From assembly GCF_023055435.1 (NCBI RefSeq), contig NW_025964223.1, forward strand, positions 44,144,001-44,208,000: a stretch of 64,000 bases of DNA, in the 5' to 3' direction. Positions 10,123 through 52,755 of this stretch are shown here, in pieces. Below the pieces are notes generated by a model. That model searched no databases, was not told the origin of the DNA, and saw only the letters and a program-made list of their open reading frames with translations. This DNA is from Haliotis rufescens. Its lineage: Eukaryota. Each line of letters begins with the position of its first letter. Within the stretch, counting starts at the first letter, position 1. Both the position numbers and the translations under genes were made by a program.

Positions 10123-10126
<4 letters not shown>

Positions 10127-10260
10127 ACGCCGAAGACCCGGGTTCGATTCCCGACATGGGTACAATGTGTGAAGCCCATTTCTGGTGTCCCCCGCCCTGA
10201 TATTGCTGGAATATTGCTAAAAGCGGCGTAAAACTATACTCACTCACTCACTCACTCACT
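10123..10260 (+). mobile_element. Short tRNA-derived SINE family C (others about 6631-6780 -, 24005-24140 +, 40182-40320 -, 48313-48451 -)
   Basis: CCCGGGTTCGATTCCCGAC B-box, GAAGCCCATTTCTGGTGTCCCC body, GCTAAAAGCGGCGTAAAAC(ACTC)n tail. Confidence 0.82.
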
Positions 10261-10625
10261 CTCTCTCTCTCTCCAAACGTCAGTATTTTGGTGATGTAAA
10301 CCAAAGCACACATTCCGTTTTTAAATCAGATCCTCAGAAACCTGTCCTAGCATGATCTGTTAAGTCAACTGGTATTATTTCCCCTATATACACGCATATA
10401 TGTTCCAATGCTAGGAATGTTCTTTAGGAAATGAAACAATCACACAACACCATGTGTGTATACATAAATATATATCACAACCCTGACATATAGCTACGTG
10501 TATATGATGCCATCAATTACACAGTGCTAATTAGACATCTACATGACTTGTGGTGTCTAATGTGGTGTTGATTACATTATTCACCGTGTATAACACCTCA
10601 TCTGTGATAGTGATTATACACCTTC

Positions 10626-10679
10626 TATATAACCCAGTCCACTTTGAGTCCTTGGCATCCGAACCGAGAGACTATTAAG
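10626..10679 (+). promoter_or_regulatory. TATA box and short non-coding exon 1, copy 1
   Basis: TATATAA 10626-10632, CATC initiator-like motif ~30 nt downstream (10657), donor AAG|GTAAGT at 10679/10680; same spacing in five copies. Confidence 0.75.
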
Positions 10680-12046
10680 GTAAGTCAATCTGTGCAGGTT
10701 CTATTGAAATTCAAATAGATTTCATTGTTCGCCGCCGATTCTGTTCTGAAGATACTTTGATTAAGATTGTATTTGTTTGTGTCGCTGATCTTATCTCCGT
10801 GTACCCGACGGCTCAACAGTAGATGAAATACGTTGAATATGAACCCAAGCACTCGTCTGAATACGTGTATTACCCTTGAATATCCAGGTTAAATGGGTCT
10901 TCAGCAACCCATGTTTGTCGTAAAAGGCGACTATGCTTGTCTTAAGAGGTGACAAACGGGATCGGGTGGTCAGGCTCACTGACTTGGTTGATGCATGTCA
11001 TCGTATGCCAGTTGCGTAGTTTGATGCTCATGGTGTCAATAACTGGATTGTCTGGTTCAGGCTCCATTATTTACAGACAGCCGTTAGCTGGAATAGTGTT
11101 CGGCGTTAAACAACAACAACAACAACAAAAGAATACATGTGTGTATCCTCCCATGTTGAAAGATATTTGCTTTCTAATCTCTCAGCACCGATACACAAAC
11201 CTCATCAACAATAGCGATGCGAGTTTATGAGCACATGCATTATTGAAAAAAAGTGTAACTCGTTCTGAAGTCTTGACGTTTTGTTCATATCTAATTAAAG
11301 TCACCTGAACGGTTACCAATTGTCTTCTCCTTCAAACAGAAGAAATTTAACACTGTTTTTAATTTGACATCCGGCGTATGAGAATCCTCAGTCCCCCGTG
11401 GAGTATAGTTTTAGTCAGTCTGTACATTTGTCGTGTTTTTCATTTTCCACAGTCCAAAATTACTGCTTAGCCGTATCCTACAACAATCAAAGCTGTATTT
11501 TCTTGCAACCAGAAGTTCATTGGGGATAACATTGTGAATCATGTTTGTACATATCTAAACATACAGCAGACACCTTAAATACTTTTATGTTAAAGAAATT
11601 GTTTTCTACATTGTCTGAGAATGGACTCAGACACTAGAGAGTGATTAGTACACGTAGCCAAATGCTTCTCCAACTGGGCCATACGAGACAAGTCATGTTG
11701 GTGTTCCTCTGGTTATTTAGGAAGCTCACCTGTAATTTCAAGGAAGAAGTTTCAACGAAGAATCGGTATCTGTCAGAATGAGCTTTCGAGTTGGTCAAAG
11801 TAGCTGTCAGACACCAAAATACGTTAATAGAAGGTACTTGTTGTTACCCTGCCTGAATCATCTCGGATTAAGGGGCAAAAGCAAGGACTGGTCGGCTCGG
11901 AGTCTGTACACACAATGTACGTCGCTATTTAAGTGCAATAAGCTTGAACGCGACGTTAAACACCATTTCACCTAACCTCACCTCAATCAATGTGATAACT
12001 AATGTATGCACAGCTGATTGCTTTATGTGCCCATATCTGTTTCCAG

Positions 12047-13800
12047 ATGAGACTGCTCGTGGTGTTCCTCCTGATGGCTTTGATTGTTCTCCCCACGGAG
12101 GGACTGTTCCGTCGTCGTCGTCGTCGCAGATGGCTCCGTGTCAGAGGCAGTAGGGTTCTCACTGGCCTTGCTGTTGCTAGCAGACTCGGTCTGATAGGAA
12201 AGAGAGGTAAGACGATGAAAATGTTGACCACCATCCGACCTGTAACCGTTTTTATATGAATGTTGTATTGCCAAATTAACGATGTGACATATTCACATAG
12301 GTATTAACTGTCGTTAAGGCCGATGTGGCGATTTCAAGAAGCGTCATACGACTCTTGCTCAAAATTCGTTTCATCAGGGTTACAGCATTCAATGCCTTAG
12401 TAAAGCTTTCATAAAGTTTTACGATAGACATGTGGAGCACAATTCCACATTTGACCCCTCCGTGACTATAATGATATCCGATACTCTTCTCTACGTTGAC
12501 TTGTATCATCTTTGCCCTGAACTATTGACGCGCCTTTGCAAAAATTTAATAGCAATGGACACGCTATAAACGACCATATCATATTACTTAATCTTTTGAA
12601 ATGTTGAGAATTATAAGATTGAAACATATCCTATTTACATATCATAACGTCACATCTTTATTGCTTCTAGGGACATAGGTTAGGCACAGGTTCACATTGC
12701 TCTACATTTTGCTTGTAAGAGGCAAACAAATTGGATCGGTGGTAAAGCTCGGTGTCATGGTTAATTGCCGCTGGCGTTCCCCGTCGGCATGGGACGCTGC
12801 ATATACTGCCAACCACTGGTTTTTCAGGCCTAGACCAGTATATTTACTGGCTGCCATTACAATTACAATATTGATGAATGCAGCATAACACAACAACCAA
12901 ACAAAGAAACACGCAAAATTCATACCATTCCAATTTGATTTACAAAATAGTAGAATAAAATCATGCATATGTTTTGTTTGTCAATTATAGATATTTTGGT
13001 ATATACACGTAACTAGGTATTATCATTTCCTGTTGTCGGGGAACTGCATTGTTCGATTATTAATGACATTCACGACCAATCACGTATTTTTGTCAGAGGC
13101 ACAAGATGACCTTTTCTCTGCTGATCTGAATGAGGATGGGAACATTGACCAATCGGAGGCTGAGAATCTCTTCGACAAACGCGATGCGGAAGAAATCATG
13201 CAATCGGCTGACATTGACGGTAAGTAACAAAATAGCAGATGCATAGTTTTAAAACTGTCATATGTATTTATCATGAGAGTCCATTGTGATTCACTTCTGA
13301 AAATAAACTTTGTTTGAGTAGTGTAGGGTGTCCTTAAACGCAGATTTTGCCTTGGCCACATGCTCAGTAGGACTGTTGAGGGTTCCTTGCATTTGAACTA
13401 CATTTATGGCTTGTCAACGTATCCCAAATACGTGGATCGATGCGCAAGATGTCAGTCACTGGATTTTCTGGTCCAGACTCGATTATTTGCAGACCTCTGT
13501 CATATAGCTGGAATATTTCTGACTGTGGCGTTAAACAAAAAAACAAAACAACATTTATGGCTGTGATTGTATCCCTCTCTATTTAGCATTCATTGGTTCG
13601 TCTTTGTGTGTTTCAGGTGACTCTGTTGTAAGTCATGAAGAGTTCATCCGAGGAGCGGAAGACTTTTTCTCTCAACGTGTGTACTATTCTATTTTATCGA
13701 ATATAATTATAAAATATCACTGCATTTTTCTAATGATGATATGCGTACCACTCCTCTCTTTTTCATGGCTTTATTTGCTTTTGTTTTAGATGCTGAGTAG
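12047..13800 (+). CDS. Secreted cationic peptide / EF-hand precursor, copy 1 (spliced, 117 aa)
   Basis: Coding exons 12047-12206, 13097-13219, 13617-13676, 13790-13800, all GT-AG and phase 1; 354 nt joined, open to TAG. Protein MRLLVVFLLMALIVLPTEG|LFRRRRRRRWLRVRGSRVLTGLAVASRLGLI|GKR|EAQDDLFSADLNEDGNIDQSEAENLFDKRDAEEIMQSADIDGDSVVSHEEFIRGAEDFFSQHAE. AATAAA at 13865-13870. Exon sizes are shared with the three paralogs. Confidence 0.9.
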
Positions 13801-14845
13801 ACATTTTCGACAAAAGTACAGCAAGATGAAATAATCTGTCAGATTTTCGACACCGGTGCTTGAAAATAAATCAGTGCAGAACAAACTGTTTTTATCATTG
13901 TTATTTGTCACTAAATCTGAAAGGACCCGTGAAGATCCCGGGTAGAATAGGTCTTCAGCAACCCATTCTTGTCGTAAAAGGCTACTATGCTTGTTGTAAA
14001 AGGCGACTAACGGGATCGGGTGGTCAGGCTCGCTGACGTGGTTGAAGCATGTCATCGATCCCGATTGCGTGGATCGATGCTCATGATATCAATCACTGGA
14101 TTGTCTGGTCCAGACTCGATTATTTACAGACCGCCGTCATAAAGCTGGAATATTGCTGAGTGCGGCCTAACCAACCAACCAACCAACTTAACCTGGAAGT
14201 CGCATACGGTTCACTTAACCTTCAGCAAATGACCAATTACACGGATCTACATTAGATGACATTCGCATACTTTGATTCCATCCATTGTGTTACATTTTTT
14301 ATGACTCGGGCTTTGATATTTACGTTGTTATTTTAAAGTAAAATAAATAGCACTGCAGTATATAACGGAAGAGAAGTGTGTGTTGTGTTTTACATTTAGT
14401 CACTGAGGGAGGAAGTGAATAGTTTTTTTTTCAAGAGGCCACAGTATGTGACCTGTGAACAACACAATGCAAATTATAACCCACACTCAATAACACATCC
14501 AACCGGCCTAGTTGTTTAAGGTGGAAATGACTTATGTCGTTCATAAATTTTTAAGTGAAAGAAAAGTTTATGAAGACTAGATTTTGTGTGTTAAGGTTAC
14601 AAAAAAAACCCCCAAAATCAACGTTCGACGTACGTGAATGAGGCTGTCAGAATGCTGCTATTCAGAACATGCTGGACAGAGGGTTACTTACGTCATATTA
14701 ATTTGGTTCTACTGCATATTGACAGCGAGGTTTACGTCTTCATGAATGACATGACCTGTAAGACATCACTGTAATACAAACGAGGGGCAAAGATGGATAT
14801 ATATATATATATATATATACTACTTCATGTCCGTTATTCAGTTAT

Positions 14846-15354: not shown

Positions 15355-16796
15355 TGTAGGCCGATGACACAACGCTCTTGTCTACAACCCCACGGGGCTT
15401 ACAGTCTTCCCTTGATTCAGTTCGTTTATATGCCAACAAATGGCGACTCACCTATAATGCCTCCAAGAGTAAATCACTTGTATTCTGCAAAACACGCCAG
15501 CGTCATAATAAAGTAACCTACAAATTTGGCGATGCAATAATTGACACTTCCGACTCCGTCAAATATGGCGGAATAATCATAAACAATAATTTATCCTGTA
15601 AAGAAAGAATCATGACATGTTGCTCAAAAGCAAGAAAAAGTGTTAATTCACTACGATCACTCGGCCTCAACGACTCAGACCTCCACCCAGTTGCATGTGT
15701 CAATATATGGAAAAGAATGATTTTATCTACAAGCTTTTATGGATGTGAATTGTTACCAGCCTTTTACGGTAAAGAACTTGAAATGATTGAATGTACACAA
15801 CGTTACTTTGCTCGTCATATACAAGGATTTGGTAAAAGACATCCAACCGATTCGTCTATTTCTAACTTGGGTATGTGGTCAATGAATGGCTACATTGATA
15901 AATGTAGACTACAATTATTAGGAAGGCTCTGCAATAACGATTGTAACTCAATAACAAAAGACCTATTTTGTGCTCACATTGCTACCAAAGCTTTTGTCAA
16001 TATTAGCCGTCCAGTAAGCATATGCAACATCCTTCTATATACTGCTAAAAAATACCATTTGGATAACTATATAAAGGGATATACTGATAGCGGTTCGTTC
16101 CCAACAAAATCGGCTTGGCGAGCTCTTGTAATCAGACGTCTATCAGAGAATGAACAGTACATCTGGAGAGAGAGACTAGCACAGAGACCGGATCTTTCAC
16201 GATACCATAAAATTCATAAACGGTTACAAATGCATGTTCTTTATAATGTAATGTATCTCTATCCACATCTAAGACAACCCCTGCAACTTTGTATTAAAAT
16301 CGGATCAAGAGCAAAAGTGTCGAAAGAATGTAACCATTGCAATAGACATTGCTATGACTATGATTGCCATATTATTTTGCACTGTGAAATGTTTATGCCT
16401 GACAGAAATAATTTCTTCTCATGCCTAATTGATAAACTTGATGTAGATGTATACGTGAAAATAGATATGCTTGACGATGATGATATGCTTTCTTTCTTTC
16501 TCGGTGCAGATGTCCATGACTTGACAAACGAACTTGATTACGATACTTGGCAAAGCATCATACTGTCTTTCTGCCACTTCGTATGGAATTTAAAGAAATA
16601 CCTTATGTATATCTACTAGATACCTTACTGCTCTCAAAATGTACATTGTAAATTGTTTATTCATAGCAGTGTATAACATGATTTCTTTGTATATAGTCAA
16701 GTAATTTCATTGATGTATTTTAAATAATGTACTTGCCCATGTAAAATCTTCGGATTCAACTCTGGAGGAAATAAAGAAATTCATTCATTCATTCAT
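15355..16796 (+). mobile_element. 5'-truncated LINE (RT C-terminus and Cys/His domain; ORF 15378-16619)
   Basis: (Y>*)ADDTTLLS...LQSSLD...WRLTYNASKS, VKYGG, CNHC...HIILHC; AATAAA 16770 followed by (ATTC)n tail. Confidence 0.88.
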
Positions 16797-23649: not shown

Positions 23650-25531
23650 ATGAGACTGCTCGTGGTGTTCCTCCTGATGGCTTTGATTGTTTTCCCCACC
23701 GAGGGTCGTCGTCGTCGTCGCAGATGGCTCCGTATCAGAGGCAGAAAGATTCTTACTGGCCTTGCTGTTGCTAGCAAACTGGGACTGATAGGAAAGAGAG
23801 GCAAGACAATGCTGACAACCATCCGATCTTCAAGTTTTGTAGTGCCAAATTAACGATGATAACTATTAACATACATATAGTAACAGTCATTATATATGGT
23901 AGATTTGGCGTTTAATCCTAAAACACATACTCACTCATTCAGTTATCTACATCTAAAACAATGACGGAGAGTAATTATTCATTTCATTTCTTTTTAAATC
24001 AGGGCGCTCGTCATGACCTCGATGACCCGGGTTCGATTCCCGACATGGGTACAATGCGTTAAGCACATTTCTGGTGTTCCCTGCCATGCTATTGCTGGAA
24101 TATTGCTGAAAGCGGCGTAAAACCAAACTCACTCGCTCACTTTTTAAAAATCGTTTCAACAAGTTATATCACGCGAGTGTTGCTTCAAAGTTATGCCCAG
24201 TGGAGTACCCTTTTTTGACTTGTCCAACTTGTTACAGTGTTTGGTCAGGTTCACTTTGCACTCTAGTATAATTGCGACGGAAACGCTATAAACAACCATG
24301 TTGATCTTGTTCTATAATGTAGAGAACAATATCATATTGTAGAAAATAATAATGTCCCAAGACCTCAGGGACACAGATTAAAAGAGGTCAATAGCACGCA
24401 TTATATTTTGCTTATAATAAGAGGCGATTAAATGGGATCGGCCGTGAATTTCGATGTCTTGGTTGATTGCAAATATTGTAACCTGACGTTGAACATAATG
24501 CTAACCAGTGGTTAATCTTGCCTAGAGATTTATATTTACAGGCTGGCATTGAAAAATTGATATACAGTCAACTACGATTTTAACGAACACGCTTATAACG
24601 ATTTGACGGATAAAACGTACTGTTGTTTTTGTCCCGGGCATTTGCTGTATATATCATGTATATATGCTTATAACGAACTAAAATTAATGGTTCCTTTGCA
24701 TTCGTTATAACCGTAGTTTACTGTTTGGCTGACTGCAGCATAACACAACAAACAAACATACCATTGAATAACATACGTGTCTTGTTTGTCAATTAAAACA
24801 TCGTTTTTACAGCTAGGTATAATAATGAATTATTCTGTTGTGGAAGAACTGCCTTGTTTCTGTACTGATGAAGACATTAACGAACTCACGATTCATGTAA
24901 TCTTTCACGTATTTTCTAGATGTGCAAAATGAACTTACCTCTGCTGATCTGAATAAGGATGGGAACATTGACCAAACAGAAGCTGAGAATCTCTTCGATA
25001 AACGCGATGCGGAACAAATCCTTGAAATGCTTGACATAGATGGCAAGTACCGAAATAGCAGATGCATGCCTTGGGAATGTCTTTTTTATCTTTGTGCTTC
25101 ACGTCTGAACATAACATGTGAAAGAGTACAATGTACTTACCGTGACATAATGGGTGCTTCTTGTAACGCAGTTTATAAAAAAATCCCTGATCACCAGTGT
25201 ACCATGACTGTAAACGTTGCAGAGTCCTTGCAACTGAACTGTGTTGCTTCAATTCTCGTACATTATATATCTTGCAGTGTCTTGACTTTTTTTTATTGTA
25301 TACCTGCCAATTTGATTAAGCATTCCTTATTTCCTTTTTCTGTGTACAGGTGACTCAGTTGTAAATCATGATGAGTTCATCCGAGCAGTGGAAGACCTTT
25401 TCTCTCAGGGTGGGTGTTCTATTTTATCGAATATAATCATCATATGTCATGAATTTCTCAAATGATGATATGCGAACTACTTCTCTCTTTATCAAGGAAT
25501 GTTTTCGTTTTTTGTTTTAGATGCTGCATAG
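23650..25531 (+). CDS. Secreted cationic peptide / EF-hand precursor, copy 2 (spliced, 114 aa)
   Basis: Coding exons 23650-23800, 24920-25042, 25350-25409, 25521-25531; donors after the first two are GC (GCAAGA, GCAAGT). MRLLVVFLLMALIVFPTEG|RRRRRRWLRIRGRKILTGLAVASKLGLI|GKR|DVQNELTSADLNKDGNIDQTEAENLFDKRDAEQILEMLDIDGDSVVNHDEFIRAVEDLFSQDAA. AATAAA at 25593-25598. Confidence 0.82.
24565..24723. mobile_element. pogo/Tigger-like MITE in an intron of copy 2
   Basis: TA-CAGTCAACTACG...AACGAA and TTCGTTATAACCGTAGTTTACTG inverted ends; a right-end fragment also at 16805-16845. Confidence 0.6.
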
Positions 25532-28022: not shown

Positions 28023-28410
28023 TAGTTTTGCAAACAAATTACAAGTTTTAGTCTGTTTTCAGTCGTACAAATGGGTATCTCTCATACCCTCACGTCTAGT
28101 CGCACGTTTAAGAGGAAGCCAGAAGCTGGAATGTAAACATTAAACTTGTTTCCGTCCGGTTGCGCACGCACCTCCCTATGACATGTAACAAATCTCTCAG
28201 CGCGCCTCTGTGCTGGACGCTCGAGAAAGTCTTTCGCGGTAGACTGCTAGTTTGTATTCTACTAGTGCTTATCGCTTATCTACAGTTGTTCTAATAAAGT
28301 AATAATAATAATATGTCTTACCTGTAGACTCCTGGAATGTAATCCTTGGTAATCCATTGTTGTGTTCAACGCGTGTTTCGCTGGTTGACAGTGATTCTAC
28401 ACGTGGCAAT

Positions 28411-30264
28411 ATGTCGGGCATTTGTGCCTCGTGTCAACGAAAACTGTCTAAAGTGGACCCTCACAAGTATTGTCCTTCCTGCATCATTAAGGACGGGTTT
28501 TCAACGTTTAAACGTTGTAAAGAATGTGAGAACTTGTCTTCAATAAACTTTAACTTGTATCTTCGTGCGTTGGCGAAGCGGGCCGCTGACAAGCGCTACA
28601 AGCAGAGAAGGACATCGGTTGGATCCTTGGACTCTGCACCCTCCACATCAGGCCCTGGGGGTGGCGGGTCGGCCACACCTAAGAAATCAGTTGATAAAGA
28701 CCCGCCTCAGTCAACTTCTGTTTTCGACAAGTCACGTGACCGTTCGCCTGCTGATGATACCACCCGCACGACCGATCTTCGTCAATCGGTTGATCGAGAG
28801 CGTCACTCAACCTCCCCTGTTACGACGGGACCGGGTGGTGACGAAGACCATGTGGGGACTACGGTCCCCAGTCGGTCCGTATCTCGTTCTTCCAACGACG
28901 ATAGGGACGTCGTGCGGGACGACAGTGGACACAGAAGTCGTTCCCGATTAAGTCGGTACGACAGGTCGAGTGCCTCGTCGAGAGACAGTACACGACACTA
29001 GGGCGTTCATCGCCATCGTGGTCGTCGTAGGTACGAGACGGACGATAACTACGATGGGGATCGTAGTACTTCTACTGTTAGAGATCGTAGCCCTCGTCCC
29101 CACGGGGACGTGCGACGTTCTCGCAGGGAGAGTTTGGGAGTTCAGCGTCGTAGTGAAGATAGTGACAGAACGACGACCTCGTCTCACTTTCATATCGACC
29201 CGGCTTTGATAGCCCAGATCACGGCGGCGGTCCTCGCCTCGACGGCGTCGACCAAGAAGGATACGACTACGTCGGGGGTCCATGGCCCGTCAACTAGTAC
29301 ACCAGCTCCTTCATCTACGCCTCCACAATCGACGTCGACGATGGATTGTAACGACAGCCCTCCTAGGCCTCCCAAAGACATTGAGTTGTTTGCTTGGCTA
29401 TCTAACTTTCTACCTGAGTTATCACAAGACGATGACAAACCGACGCGTGCGGGCTTTAAGGTCGGAGATACACCACAGACTCTTCAGTTTTCTCCTCCCG
29501 ATGTCTTCAGGGCCATGGCTCACGATATGGACCAGAACTTTGCCTCTGCTCTGCCTGGACAGAGCTTCTGCAAGCCGCCTGGTCGATCTCGTTACCCGAT
29601 CTATGGCATGCCGTTTTCGTCACCCATGACTAGGGATTTGGGTTGGGGGCTACTCTTCAAGAAACCAGCGCCCTCCAAAATTCTTGTAGAAGACAGGCAT
29701 TTGGAATCCATGGACTCTGCTGTTCGTCACCAGCTACAACCGCTTGCTATGACGTCGACAGCGATCGAGGCCCTCTCAGTGTACTTTGAGGAGAAAGAAC
29801 CCCAGGACGAGGACGGCAGGACGGTGCCATCGGTTCTCACCTGTATGCAAGGGTGGATCTCGGACGTCCTCGCCCAGTCCCGATATGTATCGGGCCAGAT
29901 TACTACGGCACGTCGCCATGGTTACATCGACTGCACTGACCTACCTGATCGTCATGGCAGGTCACTCCTACGGGCCCCGTGGTCATCGCAACAGTTGTTT
30001 GACGGTCGTACCAACGACGTTCTGGACAAGTACTCCAGGGAAGCCGAGCGTGACATCATCACTTCGGCTTCACACAACCTGTCCAGACGGCCACCGGTTT
30101 CGAACGCCCCACGACGACGTTACCGAAACGAGAATGTGCAACGGGCCTTCCGCAGGGACGTTCCTCGACAGCCGTCCCGCAAGAGAGATTCTGACAGGAA
30201 AGGTCGCCAGGTCTCCTTTTCCAAGTATCCCAGAGGTGGAAAGGGCCAGCGGGGGAGGAAGTGA
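28411..30264 (+). pseudogene. DIRS gag-like ORF1 with one in-frame stop
   Basis: N-terminal Cys/His cluster (CASC...DPHKYCPSC...CKEC), Ser/Arg-rich linker; track ORFs 28357-29001 and 29110-30264 are in the same frame, separated by TAG at 28999-29001. Confidence 0.85.
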
Positions 30265-32164
30265 GGTCCCTTCCCCCGCCGTCGCCGTGGTTGGAGTCCC
30301 CCCGGTGACTCTACCTTTAGACGAGCTACCGGTAGGGGGGAGACTTCATCACTATGCCCACAAGTGGGTTTTCCTCAACGACCCTTACGTTCAGAACATT
30401 TTGACAACAGGCTACGCCCCTCGCCTGAGATCGACGCCACCACTGACGTCATCCCCGACATTCCACATTCCACCAACGGATCGGCTGACGGAGGCCATCG
30501 ATTTGTTGGTGGAAAAGGCGGCCGTACTTCGCCACCATCGCCGGGGTACTACTCGCCCATCTTTCTAGTACCCAAGAAAAAACTCCACAAAGATGCGGCT
30601 TATTTTCAATCTCAAAAAGTTCAACGCAACATACCTCCAACAACCCGACACATTCACCATGATATCCCTCAGCTCTCTGCGTCGGATGATATTACCGAAC
30701 GACTTCCTCGTCTCGATAGACCTTCAGGACGCGTATCTACATGTACCAATAGCTTCCGAGTTCCAGAAGTACCTCCGATTCGAATACCAAGGTATTCATT
30801 ACCAGTGGGCGGCCCTCCCGTTTGGAATTTCTACGGCCCCGTGCATTTTCACACGGATCATGAAGACGGTCGTAGAATGGCTCCATCGGCAGGCGATCAG
30901 GGTCGCCTTCTACCTTGACGACGGGCTCCAAGCTCACCAATTCACAGAAGCCCTTCAAGAAGAGTTGGCGACCACCCTGAGTCTACTACGGTACCTCGGG
31001 TGGATCGTCAACTTTCAAAAGTCGGACTTGGTACCAACTCGGGATCTACAGTACATTGGGATACGCTTCCAGACGGGAGTCAATCTGGTCATGGTACCTC
31101 AAGACCGTTGGGACACGATTGTCAGCAGCGTTCGGAGACTTCTACATGCCCCGGCGTCGGTGCACACGTGGCAGGAAGTCCTCGGTCTGTTGACATCGGC
31201 CCAAGACCTGACTCGCCGAGGTCGTCTTCAACTTCGTCCGCTGGAGTTTCCCAATCTCCTGGTTCCACTTCCGGCGCAGCTACGTTGTCATCTGGAGTGG
31301 TGGCTCCAGCCGTCGAACGTTTGCGAAGGCGTCTTTATGAGCGAGCCTCCGTTCATACTACACCTATTCGTAGACGCGTCATTGGAAGGCTGGGGAGCGC
31401 ACTTCGGGGACGACCAAGCGGCCGGGCTGTGGTCGCCAGTAGAAAAGGTCCTCCACATCAACTGCCTCGAGATGGAAGCAGTGATTCGGGCGGTCGAGTT
31501 CTGGAAACTTCGACTCCGTCGGAAACGGCTGATGATACAGTCGGACAACTCCACAGTCGTCCACTGCGTCAACAAACAGGGAACGACTCGGTCGGCGGCC
31601 CTTCTGGACCGGACATTCAGGTTCTTCGCCCTCGTCGACGACTTGGACATGGGCGTACGCGCCTATCACATTCCGGGGGCCAAGAATGTGATAGCCGACG
31701 CCCTGTCGAGACCATCGAGGCCGTCTCCCACGGAGTGGATAACCATCCGACAGTCTTTCATCTGCTGACAGATCGACTCTGGTTGCCCCAAGTAGATCTC
31801 TTTGCAACCCGGTACAACAACCGCCTCCCTCGATTCGTGTCGCCGGTTCCAGACCCACGGGCATGGGACCACGACGCTCTAGCGATATCGTGGGAGGGTC
31901 TAGACGCTTACGCGTTTCCGCCAACGGTGCTGTTACCATCGATACTGGTGAAAGTTCGTCAAACGGCCAACCTACGTCTGCTTTTGGTCGCGCCTTATTG
32001 GCCGGCCCAGAAGGTGGTTCCCGGAACTTCTTCAGATAATCGATCAACCACCGTTCCCGTTGCCAGATCGAGACGACCTCCTTCTTCATCCTCACACCGA
32101 CGACTTGCATCCGGGGATAAAGAACTTCCAGCTTCACGCCTGGGTTTGCTTAAGACCTCGTTAA
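30265..32164 (+). pseudogene. DIRS reverse transcriptase / RNase H / Dam-like methyltransferase ORF, frameshifted
   Basis: Motifs VGGRL, YYSPIFLVPKK, IDLQDAYLHVP, LPFGISTAP, YLDD, FVDASLEGWGA, SDNSTVV, NVIADALSR, then DLFA...YAFPP...APYWP. Frame changes near 30525, 30580, 31740 and 32014. Start approximate. Confidence 0.9.
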
Positions 32165-33213
32165 TGAAGAAAGGCTATTCGGCTAAAGCGGCAGCGCTTG
32201 TCTCGTCGGCACATCGAGTTACGACTCGTAAGCTGTACGATGACAAGTGGACCACTTTCTCCATTTTCGCCAGGTCTCATGGCTTCAACCCGGCGGTAGC
32301 GACCCCACCACAGGTGGCGGAGTTCCTAGTCTCTCTCCGGTCATCTCGGCGTCTGAAAGGGTCGACGATCTCGACATATCTGGCAGCTTTGGCTTCGGTG
32401 GTGCTGTCTCCTACGGGCGACAAGCTCACTAAAGTACCGGAGTTGCAGAAGATCCTACGTGCCTTCATGGTTGAAGATCAGTCACGTAAATTCAGACCGC
32501 CGGCCTGGGACCTCGATGTCGTTCTGCGCAACCTGTCTAATCAGGCTTACGAGCCTCTCGATCAGGTCGCGTTCGACTTATTGTCTCAGAAAACGGCTTT
32601 CCTTCTCTCGCTGGCTACGGCTGCGAGAATTTCGGATATACATGCCATTGACGTCGGTCGGATTACGTTCGATCAGCGTAACCATGGCAACGTCCATCTT
32701 GGTCTCAGATGGGATTTTTTAGCGAAAAATCAACTTCCTGGCCAAGATCCGAGAATGTTCCACATTCCTTCCTTGTCTGCCATTATGGGCCCTCATGATC
32801 ACGCTGATCTCACCTTGTGCCCAGTTCGTGCGCTTCGTATTTACCTGCAGCGTTCTGAACAGCGACGACAACATTTTCGACGGCTGTTCATACCGCTCAC
32901 AACCAATGCAAAGAAAGTGATTACACGTAATACTCTCTCATTTTGGTTGAGAGCGGTAATTCTCAGAGCTTACGAGGCGCAAGGACTCGCACCTCCCACC
33001 TCCTCTCATCCGCACGAAGTTCGAGCCATCGCTTCAACCCTAGCACTCCACAGTAATTGTTCGCTACAAGCTATTATGGAGGGCAGCTTTTGGAGATCTA
33101 CTTCAGTGTTTGCTTCGCATTATCTTAGAGATATCTCCACAGAAGATGTTGAAGGACTCAAACAGTTTGGTCCACTCGTGGTGGCACAACAGATCTCTCA
33201 GAAAAGACAGTGA
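31000..33213 (+). CDS. DIRS tyrosine recombinase ORF (catalytic part about 32150-33213), overlapping the RT frame
   Basis: AARISDI (catalytic R), HPHEVRA (HxxR), FWRS..VFASHY (W, catalytic Y), LCPVRALRIYL, PPAWDL. True start uncertain. Confidence 0.88.
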   Translation: MDRQLSKVGLGTNSGSTVHWDTLPDGSQSGHGTSRPLGHDCQQRSETSTCPGVGAHVAGSPRSVDIGPRPDSPRSSSTSSAGVSQSPGSTSGAATLSSGVVAPAVERLRRRLYERASVHTTPIRRRVIGRLGSALRGRPSGRAVVASRKGPPHQLPRDGSSDSGGRVLETSTPSETADDTVGQLHSRPLRQQTGNDSVGGPSGPDIQVLRPRRRLGHGRTRLSHSGGQECDSRRPVETIEAVSHGVDNHPTVFHLLTDRLWLPQVDLFATRYNNRLPRFVSPVPDPRAWDHDALAISWEGLDAYAFPPTVLLPSILVKVRQTANLRLLLVAPYWPAQKVVPGTSSDNRSTTVPVARSRRPPSSSSHRRLASGDKELPASRLGLLKTSLMKKGYSAKAAALVSSAHRVTTRKLYDDKWTTFSIFARSHGFNPAVATPPQVAEFLVSLRSSRRLKGSTISTYLAALASVVLSPTGDKLTKVPELQKILRAFMVEDQSRKFRPPAWDLDVVLRNLSNQAYEPLDQVAFDLLSQKTAFLLSLATAARISDIHAIDVGRITFDQRNHGNVHLGLRWDFLAKNQLPGQDPRMFHIPSLSAIMGPHDHADLTLCPVRALRIYLQRSEQRRQHFRRLFIPLTTNAKKVITRNTLSFWLRAVILRAYEAQGLAPPTSSHPHEVRAIASTLALHSNCSLQAIMEGSFWRSTSVFASHYLRDISTEDVEGLKQFGPLVVAQQISQKRQ

Positions 33214-33397
33214 ATTTGTGTTTTATTCACTTTGGAGTTTTTGCTCGACACTTCGTGACATATAACAGGTTACAATAAAAGCTGTTGGTGAATGTACGCA
33301 TTCTTATGGTTTTATGTTGCGTGCAGTACTTCTGCTTTTTATTATGGTTATTCGGTGTATGCATCGTCTTCCCATACATTATAGTACTGCTCGTATT

Positions 33398-37719: not shown

Positions 37720-37773
37720 TATATAAAGTCAACAAGCATGTCCCTGGCATCTGACTTCGAGAGGCTACTCAAG
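37720..37773 (+). promoter_or_regulatory. TATA box and non-coding exon 1, copy 3
   Basis: TATATAAA 37720-37727, exon about 37749-37773, donor AAG|GTAAGT. Confidence 0.75.
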
Positions 37774-38220: not shown

Positions 38221-39712
38221 ATGAGACTGCTCGTGGTGTTCCTCCTGATGGCTTTGATTGTTCTCCCCACGGAAGGACTATTCCGTCGTCGTCGTCGTCG
38301 CAGATGGCTCCGTATCAGAGGCAGCAAGGTTCTGAAAGGAATTGGCATTGCTGCCAAACTGGGACTGTTAGGAAAGAGAGGTAAGAGGATAGTTATGTTG
38401 ACAACCATCCGATCTGCAACTGCTGTCTATACGACTTTTTTTCTGCCAAATTAACGATGAAAACTATTCGCAAACATATTAACAGTCGTCATATGACCAA
38501 TATGGCATTAAATCGTGATGCACACACTTACTCATTCAATCATGTAAAACTATGACAATAATGAATGTTATTGGTGTCATGTGACGACTGTTGCTTGAAA
38601 CTTGTGTGATCACATATATTTTTAGCATTCAAGGCCTCAGCAAAGCTTTTATAATCTTTTATATAGACACGTGGAGGATAATTTGAACGAACCACTGACC
38701 AAAGTGTTATCCTATGCACCATATTGATTTGTTCCATATGGTCCCGTGATTATTCACGTGAACACATGACTTACCCTTGCAATTTAATTGTCATGAAACG
38801 ACCAATTTCATTAATTATTTGAAATTAGGTGTAAACTGGATCAGTTGCTTGACTGCATTTATCGTACCACGTCGGCATGAGCCGCTGCACATAACGTCAA
38901 CCACTTATTTGTCCGGCCTAGGACGGCTTATGTACATCGTTAAATAGGAATATTGCTGACTATATAGCACAACAAACAAACAAACCAACAAATCATACTA
39001 TTTGAATCTGTTTTACAGAACCATACAATTTAATCACGTATGTTTTGTATGTTTTCAAAACAGGAAACGATAATATATAGCTGTATAACTACAGTATTCT
39101 ATAGCAATTTATTAAATCACGATTCTTTGAATCTTCCAAGATGTGCAAGATGACCTTGCCTCTGCTGATCTGAATGAGGATGGCAACATTGACCAATCAG
39201 AAGCTGAGAATCTATTCGACAAACGAGATGCGGAACAAATCCTAAACTTGGTTGACATAGATGGCAAGTAACGAAATAGCAGATGTATAGATTTCAACCT
39301 GTCATGTGTATGTTTTTATCACAATGAAATATGCTATTGAGATTGCTGTCTGAAATTAACCTGTGTATGAGTGGTCATCCCGTCATCGTGACAGTCTCAG
39401 GGGTCCTTGCTATTAAATTGCTTTATAACTTCAATTCTAATACATATGTTTCAGAGTCATGCATTGATTTGATTATATTCCTGTCGCTTTTATCTGGCAT
39501 TCATTGTTTGTGATGGTGTTTTCAGGTGACTCAGTTGTCAGTCATGATGAGTTCATCCGAGGAATGGAAGACCTTTTCTCACAGGGTGGGTGTTGTTCTT
39601 TTTGGATACGGGTAATTTCTTATAATATAGCACGTGATTTCTCTAATTATTCGTGTAATTTCTGTCTTTCTCATATGCAATGTGTTTTTGTTTTGTTGTA
39701 GGTGACGAGTAG
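38221..39712 (+). CDS. Secreted cationic peptide / EF-hand precursor, copy 3 (spliced, 117 aa)
   Basis: Coding exons 38221-38380, 39141-39263 (GC donor), 39526-39585, 39702-39712. MRLLVVFLLMALIVLPTEG|LFRRRRRRRWLRIRGSKVLKGIGIAAKLGLL|GKR|DVQDDLASADLNEDGNIDQSEAENLFDKRDAEQILNLVDIDGDSVVSHDEFIRGMEDLFSQGDE. AATAAA at 39775-39780. Confidence 0.88.
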
Positions 39713-46367: not shown

Positions 46368-47844
46368 ATGAGACTGCTCGTGGTGTTCCTCCTGATGGCG
46401 TTGATTGTTCTCCCCACGGAAGGACTGTTTCGTCGTCGTCGTCGTCGCAGATGGCTCCGAATCAGAGGCAGAAAGGTTCTGAAAGGAATTGGCATTGCTG
46501 CCAAACTGGGACTGTTAGGAAAGAGAGGTAAGAGGATAGTTATGTTGACAACCATCCGATCTGCAACTGCTGTCTATTCGACTTTTTTTCTGCCAAATTA
46601 ACGATGAAAACTATTCGCAAACATATCAATAGTCGTCATATCACCAATATGACATTAAATCGTGATGCACACACTTACTCATTCAATCATGTACAACCAT
46701 GGCAATAATAAATGTTATTTGTGTCATGTGACGACTGTTGCTTGAAACGTGTGTGATCACATATATTTTTAGCATTCAAGGCCTCAGCAAAGCTTTTATA
46801 ATCTTTTATATAGACACGTGGAGGATAATTTGAACGAACCACTGACCAAAGTGTTATCCGATGCACCATATTGACTTGTTCACGTGAACACATGACTTAC
46901 CCTTGCAATATAAGTGTCATGAAACGACCAATTTCGTTAATCATTTGAAATTAAGCGTAAACCGGATAACTTGCTTGACTGCATTTATCGTACCACGTCG
47001 GCATGAGCCGCTGCACATAACGTCAACCACTTATTTGTCCGGCCTAGGACGGCTTATGTACATCGTTAAATAGGAATATTGCTGACTATATAGCACAACA
47101 AACAACGAACCAACAAATCATACTATTTGAATCTGTTTTACAGAACCACACAATTTAATCACGTAAGTTTTGTATGTTTTCAAAACAGGAAACGATAATA
47201 TATAGCTGTATAACTACAGTATTCTATAGCAATTTATTAAATCACGATTCTTTGAATCTTCCAAGATGTGCAAGATGACCTTGCCTCTGCTGATCTGAAT
47301 GAGGATGGCAACATTGACCAATCAGAAGCTGAGAATCTATTCGACAAACGAGATGCGGAACAAATCCTAAACTTGGTTGACATAGATGGCAAGTAACGAA
47401 ATAGCAGATGTATAGATTTCAACCTGTCATGTGTATGTTTTTATCACAATAAAAATATGCTTTTGAGATTGCTGTCTGAAATTAACCTGTGTATGAGTGG
47501 TCACCCCGTCATCGTGACGTCGACAGTCTCATGGGTCCTTGCTATTAAACTGCTTTATAACTTCAACTCTAATACATATGTTTCAGAGTCATGCATTGAT
47601 TTGATTATATTCCTGTCGTTTGTATCTGGCATTCATTGTTTGTGATGGTGTTTTCAGGTGACTCAGTTGTCAGTCATGATGAGTTCATCCGAGGAATGGA
47701 AGACCTTTTCTCACAGGGTGGGTGTTGTTCTTTTTGGATACGGGTAATTTCTTATAATATAGCACGTGATTTCTCTAATTATTCGTGTAATTTCTGTCTT
47801 TCTCATATGCAATGTGTTTTTGTTTTGTTGTAGGTGACGAGTAG
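46368..47844 (+). CDS. Secreted cationic peptide / EF-hand precursor, copy 4 (spliced, 117 aa)
   Basis: Coding exons 46368-46527, 47266-47388 (GC donor), 47658-47717, 47834-47844. Same protein as copy 3 except S35R (GRKVLKG). AATAAA at 47907-47912. Confidence 0.88.
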
Positions 47845-51254: not shown

Positions 51255-51537
51255 GTGTATCACTTCTAAATGCCTTTCAAAGACTTTATTCAAAATAATT
51301 CAGAAAAAAACTATTAATCTGTTATAATATAGTTCATTGTGAAAAAGCAAACACAAACATATGTGTTGACATGAACACAAATGACTTTCCTAATTCACAC
51401 CTATATCATGCTATTAACGTCAGCTTCACCGTTATCAATTCCTAGTCACATATTGCGGTGTCTGATGTGGTGTTGAGACTAATATTCGTCGTTTATCACA
51501 CAAAACACCTCAGCTCTGATTGCGGCCATAAACCTCC

Positions 51538-52755
51538 TATATAACCCAGACAGCAATGCGTCCCTGGCTTCCGAATTCGACGTTCGTCTGAAGGTAAGTA
51601 AATAGGTACATTCTATTGACGATCAAACAGTGTTTGAAGACAATTATTCCTTAACGTCTCCGTTCATGATATTTATACGTTTGCGTTTGTTTACCATTTG
51701 TAGGTTTAAAGTGTTTACTGTCAACAGACATGTTATTGATCATGACTCGATCGTCTTCCGCTCAGTGCCCATATGTTTGTTAGTGTTTCTCATTTTCTCC
51801 TATGTCTATTTATATAGTTAAAGAAGTGAACGAATTAATGGTTTCATAAAAACAATGCACACGGTTATTTATGTTTGAGATTCATAGTCAACTTTAAAAT
51901 GAAAAGAGCTTCTTTTCTGTCCATACGTTCGTCCGCCTTAAGAAAGTACTCACATAATTTTCCCACATCCGCAATGTGTATGATTTCCATTGTGCCTGAT
52001 GTGACGAAAAATACAGATACTCCCTCTCATTCTGACCAGTATGTTTCTAGATTTTCTTTGACTTTGTAAAGTCTCTGACTTTATTTATTAATATTATTAT
52101 TAAGCTTTGCAATTCTGATGTTTCAAAGGTATGAGTTGAACTGCATGGCTAACTTTCATTTGTGATATGATAATTCGATGTTTTGTCATTGCGTGTTTCC
52201 GGTGACTCCATCTCTAGTCACATCCAGAGTTCATCCCAGAGTTGTTGATTTTTTTTTCAATGTTTAATCGAATATATGACAGATTAAATATCATGGTTAT
52301 TCCTCTCATGATGATGAGTAGCAAATAACCACGGTGACCTCTTTATCGCGTGGGAGGCACGGGTTGCCAACTCGTCTATGGCGCCACAAGTCGCTATGCA
52401 GAGTTGCATCCCTTGGGCACAGCAGAAACCTATGATCGAGGGTTGAAATCCCAGTTCGTCCAGATTATGTTTCCAGGTTTGTCAACACCATACCCGTGCT
52501 CGTGCGTTTTACCAAAGTTGTAAAATTCTGAGACCTGTATTACTTCGGGCTTTTCTCCCACACTAAGCTGACACGCCGTGATATAACCGGAATAATGTCC
52601 AAAGGGGCATACAAATCCTACTCACTCACTCACTTTTTATCATTTTTGCGTTTTTTGTTTCAGATGCTGAGTAGATAGTTTCACAACCAGGGCAGTACCA
52701 TGAAGATGATATGATATGATATGATAATGCTTTCTACTTAATGCTTGAAAATAAA
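51538..52755 (+). pseudogene. Decayed family copy 5 lacking the peptide exon and first EF-hand exon
   Basis: TATATAA 51538-51544 and non-coding exon 1 with AAG|GTAAGT (51593/51594) are present. Degenerate exon 4 at about 52202-52260 (GTGACTCC...GAGTTCATCC, acceptor CAG>CCG). Last exon CAG|ATGCTGAGTAG 52664-52674, AATAAA 52750-52755. No exon 2/3 similarity seen in the ~600 bp between. Confidence 0.75.
52352..52633 (+). mobile_element. SINE family A, diverged, in last intron of pseudogene copy 5
   Basis: GGAGGCACGGGTTGCC head, GCTGACACGCCGTGATATAAC, (ACTC)n tail. Confidence 0.8.

Follow-up and report, generated by a model that had tools for sequence, protein, structure and literature searches.

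Tandem abalone genes for predicted secreted precursors that join an arginine-rich peptide to a probable EF-hand-pair pro-piece

A 64,000-nucleotide stretch of the genome of the abalone Haliotis rufescens (RefSeq assembly GCF_023055435.1, contig NW_025964223.1, positions 44,144,001 to 44,208,000, forward strand; hereafter the window) carries part of a tandem array of small genes, each encoding a signal peptide, a short cationic peptide and an acidic tail that probably folds as an EF-hand pair. The window has a G+C content (GC) of ~0.38 and numerous short repeats. Searching it by tblastn with the translations of the two EF-hand exons located four copies of the exon pair, all on the + strand, at 13097-13676 (copy 1), 24920-25409 (copy 2), 39141-39585 (copy 3) and 47266-47717 (copy 4). 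Three further copies just downstream of the window end bring the whole array to seven genes. Upstream of every copy lies a conserved exon in which an ATG directly follows the acceptor AG and which codes for MRLLVVFLLMALIVLPTEG, then LFRRRRRRRWLRVRGSRVLTGLAVASRLGLI, then Gly-Lys-Arg. Still further upstream, a TATATAA box precedes a short non-coding exon that ends AAG/GTAAGT (the slash marks the exon boundary).

Copy 1 is a five-exon gene on the + strand, and the segment 13097-13800, to which the original prediction of a calcium-controlled pro-domain had been attached, holds its exons 3-5. Its promoter TATATAA (10626-10632) belongs to a block conserved at five places in the window; the short non-coding exon 1 ends AAG/GTAAGT at 10679 (promoter and exon together 10626-10679), has no contig cover, and we infer its 5′ end. 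Exon 2 (12047-12206) supplies the ATG, a 19-residue signal peptide, a peptide reading LFRRRRRRRW...LGLI, Gly-Lys-Arg and the initial base of the codon that follows. Exon 3 (13097-13219) encodes, with secondary structure taken from AlphaFold, helix E1, loop 1 (13123-13158), helix F1, K81-R82 (13177-13182), helix E2 and residues 1-4 of loop 2 (13210-13219). Intron 3 (13220-13616; phase 1, GT..AG) then interrupts loop 2 and contains an abundant short repeat (~13409-13552). Exon 4 (13617-13676) completes loop 2 (to 13642) and adds helix F2, and exon 5 (13790-13885) contributes the final residues H-A-E, the stop codon TAG (13798-13800), AATAAA (13865-13870) and poly(A) addition near 13885. The spliced product equals, residue for residue, the 117-aa RefSeq protein P0001 of H. 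rufescens, 'calcium-binding protein 5-like', which was reached through the exon-3 search; exon 2 gives its residues 1-53 and exon 5 matches its tail. Database searches with copy 1 were run exon by exon. These genes are thus annotated publicly, yet merely as 'calcium-binding' or 'uncharacterized'.

The coding part of copy 2 (23650-25531, + strand; exon 2 23650-23800, exon 3 24920-25042, exon 4 25350-25409, exon 5 from 25521, stop ending at 25531) encodes exactly the last 115 residues of RefSeq model P0093. Copy 3 (38221-39712, + strand; exon 2 38221-38380, exon 3 39141-39263, exon 4 39526-39585, exon 5 from 39702) matches P0005, and copy 4 (46368-47844, + strand; exon 2 46368-46527, exon 3 47266-47388, exon 4 47658-47717, exon 5 from 47834) matches P0003. 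The homologue of exon 1 in copy 3 provides the N-terminal extension of P0005: this exon (37735-37773) and the homologous exon of copy 2 contain an in-frame ATG that adds 12-31 residues ahead of the signal peptide in P0005 and P0093. Copy 1 has no such ATG. Donor sites also differ, with GC instead of GT at intron 2 of copy 2 (23801-23802) and at intron 3 of copies 2 (25043-25044), 3 (39264-39265) and 4 (47389-47390); copy 1 uses GT at introns 2 and 3. The RefSeq models P0093, P0005 and P0003 splice over the GC donors, and read contigs were aligned on copy 1 only.

Transcription of copy 1 was followed with contigs of four public runs (X1, X5, X6 and X8), classed as RNA only by automated guess, placed on 10400-14000. 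X1, X5 and X6 each contain GT..AG joints for the three coding introns, at depths of 522-1518 for 12206>13097 and of 812-1758 for both 13219>13617 and 13676>13790, and the interior of intron 2 falls to single-figure depth outside repeats. One X1 contig ends behind 13885, 15 bases past the end of AATAAA, in a run of A that hangs as a loose end. The removal of three introns together with a poly(A) end argues for an mRNA-type source. The intron within loop 2, already placed there by the original prediction, is real because its joint is present in three runs. X8, which bears another organism label, shows very high summed depth over the copy 1 exons, where it has only loose ends, from related copies; contig depth cannot rank genes. 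In the arginine run of copy 1 (12107-12112), contigs vary by one CGT codon, X5 having one Arg more and X1 one Arg less. Judged by these sequences, the length of the poly-Arg run appears to vary among individuals or close copies, as it does among species.

Copy 1 belongs to a sizeable family, and all counts given below out of 55 refer to a set of 55 public family proteins. A HMMER profile of exon 3 run against 1.84 billion representatives returned 68 matches at E<=0.001, about ten with the same single-domain layout and the others multi-loop. Word-based protein searches returned 10, 20 and 50 matches; among the 50, 47 were family members at E<=5.6e-10 and the other three were generic EF-hand proteins at E>=3.4e-5. 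The named members belong to four Haliotis species (H. rufescens, H. cracherodii, H. rubra and H. asinina) and to the vent snail Gigantopelta aegis, and the H. rufescens genome alone holds at least 53 exon-3 profile matches at E<=0.01, distributed as tandem arrays over several contigs. Members share a signal peptide, a start of W, F or L plus an arginine run, a hypervariable cationic amphipathic peptide (+6 to +18) and a conserved tail. The peptide is followed by G-KR, GG-KR or G-R in 54/55 proteins, and the pairing of a hypervariable cationic peptide with a GKR site recurs in 52/55. None of the family's public proteins is named as an antimicrobial peptide, and literature searches, with supplements outside their scope, found no published account of an abalone EF-hand/cationic peptide family. 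In a tree of 48/55 proteins over 62 columns, which left out the truncated models P0009, P0010, P0063, P0094, P0117, P0119 and P0120, Gigantopelta forms one clade (support 100/99). Its placement is weak (83/59), so we do not infer the age of the family.

P0001 begins with the signal peptide, continues with a linear peptide of 31 residues (charge +11) that includes seven consecutive Arg, and ends, after Gly-Lys-Arg, in a 64-residue acidic tail. With 21 Asp/Glu against 3 Lys/Arg the tail has a charge of -18; the counts for tail and peptide agree exactly with those first reported. The peptide contains a single Trp, near-invariant across the family, and can form an amphipathic helix. From its sequence, Gly-Lys-Arg is a putative convertase cleavage site and amidation donor. 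The peptide lacks Cys in all seven array genes. A mytimycin-type Cys-rich peptide was rejected as a candidate: a scan of the window found no Cys-rich open stretch beside the EF-hand exons, and the peptide is linear.

Tail and peptide charges are matched across the family. They correlate at rho -0.65 over 47 proteins (8 truncated or unparsed dropped) and at rho -0.75 (p 0.02) on 9 cluster means, and in 9/9 clusters the sum of tail and peptide is net negative, so that the tail over-compensates. Such matching across subfamilies is consistent with neutralisation of the peptide by the acidic domain and lends support to that part of the original prediction. The ratio of nonsynonymous to synonymous differences (pN/pS), summed over 21 non-independent pairs from the seven array genes, was 0.04 in the signal peptide and 0.43 in the peptide; the EF exons gave 0.35 (exon 3) and 0.14 (exon 4). 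By these values the tail appears to be under purifying selection and at least as constrained as the peptide.

The two 12-residue loops initially noticed in the tail withstood closer comparison. Loop 1 reads DLNEDGNIDQSE in copies 1, 3 and 4 and DLNKDGNIDQTE in copy 2; loop 2 reads DIDGDSVVSHEE in copy 1, DIDGDSVVNHDE in copy 2 and DIDGDSVVSHDE in copies 3 and 4, with the phase-1 intron cutting it after the fourth residue. The four copies agree at positions 1, 3, 5 and 12, and position 9 of loop 2 is Ser in three of them and Asn in copy 2, either of which can act as a ligand. Across the family, loop 1 keeps D1, D5, D9 and E12 in 55/55 proteins, N3 and G6 in 54/55, and Ile or Val at position 8 in 54/55. 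Loop 2 has canonical ligands in 44/55, with Ser, Ala or Asn instead of Gly at position 6, and in all 44 of these proteins exactly 17 residues separate the loops. Loop starts thus lie 29 residues apart compared with ~36 in calmodulin, seven fewer. At E<=0.001, Pfam EF-hand_1 (PF00036) matches 47/55 proteins and EF-hand_7 (PF13499) 29/55. A profile built from 20 family proteins and compared with solved structures finds calmodulin at E 4.6e-9 (four hands summed; best single stretch E 0.04-0.06), aligning the second hand, including the residues around an internal Lys-Arg pair, with the fourth hand of calmodulin and the start of its entering helix. Dockerin type I (PF00404) was tried and rejected: it scores 13.7-18.7 bits against a cut-off of 22.9, covers loop 1 and the exiting helix only, and the context here is eukaryotic and secreted.

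Structure prediction, one of the checks that had been proposed, recovered an EF-hand pair topology. AlphaFold2 was given P0001 with a 20-row alignment and the distant paralogue P0054 with 15 rows, and both models show helix, loop with short strand, helix, twice over, with a predicted local distance difference test (pLDDT) score of 66-75 in the tail. Foldseek searches of the PDB returned mostly EF-hand proteins, over ~60 columns at a root-mean-square deviation (rmsd) of 2.2-2.9; the top match, 2kn2, a calmodulin lobe fused to its target peptide, spans 87 columns at rmsd 4.9 and E 7.5e-3, too weak for use. With VIA-align, Z reached 6.7 across model residues 49-117, and the best structural matches were EF-hand pairs, among them calmodulin lobes, ALG-2, EH domains, S100 proteins and, from the secretory pathway, MCFD2 (Z 5.9). 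Protein Atlas returned EF-hand clusters only, with scores of 0.81-0.86, below the 0.9 line.

Several results count against a folded EF-hand pro-piece that holds the peptide. Single exons score only 13.9-15.7 bits for EF-hand_1, whose gathering cut-off is 25.4, and full-length public proteins mostly stay just below it (24.3-26.9 bits; P0001 24.3). The cut-off is passed by 1/6 complete proteins (8 scanned), and EF-hand_7 reaches 17-21.5 bits on full-length public proteins against a cut-off of 30. The strict 13-position PROSITE pattern PS00018 finds nothing in 12/13 proteins, P0001 among them, and two matches in Gigantopelta P0082; copy 1 departs from it at position 13 of loop 1 (Ala) and position 6 of loop 2 (Ser). 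Both AlphaFold2 models are moderate overall (mean pLDDT 60 and 59, predicted template modelling score 0.41 and 0.39, for P0001 and P0054), and the peptide stays below pLDDT 60 in each, leaving the models silent on contact between peptide and domain. Foldseek gave no match at E<=0.001 (best E 7.5e-3), and VIA-align Z values below 8 count as middling. Charge matching, finally, is expected of any acidic spacer and does not require a fold. We conclude from the loop conservation, the Pfam and profile matches, the AlphaFold models and the structural matches, a body of support that is consistent but moderate, that the tail is probably a conserved, compact, folded EF-hand pair, as originally proposed in place of a loose acidic spacer, and we predict that it binds Ca2+.

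The Lys-Arg pair between the hands fared less well. It had been described as an invariant second dibasic site at which cleavage might release the peptide. Its motif, LFDKRDAE, is indeed identical in the four window copies and in the three just beyond (7/7 array genes), and in both models the pair sits in the short linker between the hands, just ahead of helix 81-91. Among the 55 proteins, by contrast, the corresponding pair is KR in 15, RR in 10, AR in 10, TR in 7, ER in 5, RQ in 5, KK in 2 and NR in 1, making it dibasic in only 27/55. The ER variants are five proteins of H. asinina and H. rubra; AR, TR and RQ occur in other subfamilies; and NR occurs in P0002, the H. cracherodii orthologue that is the tree partner of copy 1 (support 99/100). 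What is conserved is a core of R-D/A-A-E, aligned with capping residues of the calmodulin helix. Since the site is dibasic in just 27/55 proteins and NR in P0002, a conserved second cleavage site is not supported, and the alignment would make the internal pair merely the start of the entering helix of the second hand.

A folded calcium-binding pro-piece had been singled out as the unusual part of the system, which overstates the case: mussel mytimycins offer a published precedent (PMC8004829, PMC3210125). The mytimycin precursor is described as a signal peptide followed by a 54-residue antifungal peptide with 12 Cys, a dibasic site and an anionic extension of 75 residues that holds an EF-hand (PMC8004829, PMC3210125). 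The EF-hand is there reported to be highly conserved among variants, exon 1 to be non-coding and the layout to be unlike that of other mussel antimicrobial peptides, and the role of the EF-hand is stated as unknown (PMC8004829). By that description the abalone precursors share the order of signal peptide, cationic peptide, dibasic site (here GKR) and anionic C-terminal extension, which holds an EF-hand there and an EF-hand pair here. They differ in that the abalone peptide is linear, poly-Arg and without Cys, and in having two loops in 64 residues where the described mytimycin extension has one EF-hand motif in 75. The hosts differ too, bivalves (Mytilida) there and vetigastropod and neomphaline gastropods here. 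No mytimycin was recognisable by name or appearance among the 68 profile matches or the 50 word-search matches.

The front end of the gene resembles another mussel family. According to the published description, exon 1 of myticalin genes is non-coding and confined to the 5′ untranslated region, exon 2 opens with the ATG, and the dibasic site is followed immediately by a phase-1 intron, a layout identical to that of the abalone copies (PMC5577615). Myticalins and modiocalins are likewise described as multigene families whose precursors join a signal peptide, a hypervariable Arg-rich linear peptide, a Gly plus dibasic site (amidation) and an anionic extension; their extension is described as moderately conserved, acidic and domain-free (PMC5577615), whereas three exons encode the abalone extension, a conserved EF-hand pair. 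Within abalone, the mantle protein Hdh-SMP5 is also small, secreted and Asp-rich, with 134 aa and EF-hand loops at residues 36-48, 56-68 and 112-124 behind a 16-residue signal peptide (PMC10741955). By this description, its loops follow the signal peptide directly and are spaced differently, a cationic peptide is lacking and no dibasic site is reported (PMC10741955).

Calmodulin is a further parallel, with the profile match at E 4.6e-9 given above and structural matches that include calmodulin-peptide complexes such as calmodulin-melittin (8ahs, Z 5.9); here too the partner peptide is basic, carries a near-invariant Trp and is a potential amphipathic helix. Unlike calmodulin, the abalone domain is secreted and a single pair, with its loops closer together. 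Cathelicidins and BRICHOS-type antimicrobial peptide precursors likewise combine a conserved folded pro-domain, which proteolysis removes, with a hypervariable cationic peptide. Their folds differ from that of the abalone domain, being cystatin-like and BRICHOS, respectively; in them the pro-domain lies ahead of the peptide and calcium is not known to be involved.

Taken together, these observations lead us to favour, by a modest measure, an expressed and secreted precursor in which an EF-hand-pair pro-piece keeps a cationic, antimicrobial-type peptide harmless until it is cut off. In the secretory pathway, which is rich in calcium, the acidic domain would bind two Ca2+ ions and fold around them, and its fold together with its charge of -18 would keep a membrane-active peptide soluble and harmless for as long as both are one chain. 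A proprotein convertase would then cut after GKR, a carboxypeptidase and an amidating enzyme would finish the peptide, and peptide and domain would part on release. Free Ca2+ is high in the endoplasmic reticulum, the Golgi and granules and reaches ~10 mM in the sea-water-like blood of marine molluscs, and canonical loops would be saturated in the secretory-pathway lumen and in the blood alike. Calcium is therefore likely to be a standing structural cofactor and unlikely to be a switch or trigger. This bears directly on the calcium-controlled safety catch of the original prediction, in which Ca2+ binding or cleavage at DKR/D would actively free the peptide from the domain: two canonical-looking loops are kept, and the KR is retained in the inter-hand linker throughout the array, but there is no obvious low-to-high Ca2+ step to serve as a switch, and the absence of the dibasic pair from about half of the family and from the closest orthologue speaks against a release site. 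We consider such a catch distinctly improbable. A more specific form of the favoured precursor, which we entertain tentatively and think rather doubtful as it stands, is a calmodulin-melittin-type pair, in which the Ca2+-loaded EF-hands would open a hydrophobic cleft and clamp their own Trp-anchored poly-Arg peptide. The domain would then act as a built-in Ca2+-dependent inhibitor, and the peptide would be freed only after cleavage, when an anionic microbial membrane or granule acidity competes for it.

Other readings assign the domain or the peptide a different task. The Ca2+-loaded acidic domain might condense the precursor into dense granules in a Ca2+/pH-dependent, chromogranin-like manner, with neutralisation secondary. 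A strongly acidic tail that over-compensates the peptide in every cluster would suit such packaging, as would the existence of lumenal EF-hand pairs such as MCFD2 and the very high X8 contig depth over the exons, though depth cannot rank genes; the sequences show no aggregation-specific feature, however, and chromogranin-type binding is low-affinity and unstructured, in contrast to the canonical invariant loops found here, which makes this reading unlikely. The domain might instead be the working secreted protein, for instance an immune factor of the S100 type or a calcium-binding component of shell, mucus or blood, with the cationic peptide as co-product. The tail has a lower pN/pS (0.14-0.35) than the peptide (0.43), S100 proteins are among the structural matches, and Hdh-SMP5 is reported to rise in shell repair (PMC10741955). 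By the same description, however, Hdh-SMP5 has a different layout without a cationic peptide (PMC10741955), and the recurrence of a hypervariable cationic peptide with GKR in 52/55 relatives suggests a pro-piece, so we give two separate products as little credence as the safety catch; by analogy, Hdh-SMP5 keeps a role in biomineralisation weakly alive. Least probable of all, in our estimate, is that the EF-hand tail is still a pro-piece and the peptide an amidated signalling peptide or toxin with no part in host defence. A G-K-R site followed by an acidic spacer is also a hallmark of neuropeptide precursors. Peptides that are hypervariable, amphipathic and charged +6 to +18, in a genome with at least 53 exon-3 profile matches in tandem arrays, nevertheless form a pattern that suits effector families more than conserved hormones.

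Other features of the window lie between and beyond the four genes. A fifth block resembling promoter and exon 1 occurs at 51453-51630, with TATATAA at 51538 and AAG/GTAAGT at 51593. A fifth gene in the window was considered and rejected, because no family coding exons follow this block within the window and the next EF exon lies ~4.5 kb past its end; the block is either an orphan first exon or one followed by an exceptionally long intron. A 413-aa open frame (15378-16619) between copies 1 and 2 has no Pfam match at E<=0.001 and is probably a mobile-element remnant. Between copies 2 and 3, a GC-rich insert at ~28300-33300 (GC 0.48-0.56) contains an RVT_1 frame (E 5.7e-20) and a weak Phage_integrase match below cut-off (E 5.4e-4), and from these it looks like a DIRS/Ngaro-type retroelement. 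A short interspersed repeat recurs many times across the window, for example at 10872-11146, at 13409-13552 in intron 3 of copy 1 and at 13924-14187, with a summed contig depth of 10^5 in the four runs, and a second recurring repeat with a tRNA-like end is found at 10123-10252.

Antimicrobial-peptide pro-pieces are commonly regarded as no more than loose acidic spacers. The one published case known to carry an EF-hand is that of the mussel mytimycins, where the role of the EF-hand is called unknown (PMC8004829); the abalone family would be a second and much larger case, built on another type of peptide (linear, poly-Arg). With a 64-residue domain, a 31-residue peptide, a single Trp as probe and natural variants in charge and in the internal KR, it is a simple system in which to study how a calcium-binding fold affects the cationic peptide attached to it. 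It also represents an untapped source of Arg-rich peptides in a farmed animal prone to bacterial disease. If the domain does clamp its own peptide in the manner of calmodulin and melittin, gastropods and mussels would both have recruited EF-hands to antimicrobial pro-pieces, perhaps independently, and such recruitment may be a general solution for very cationic peptides.

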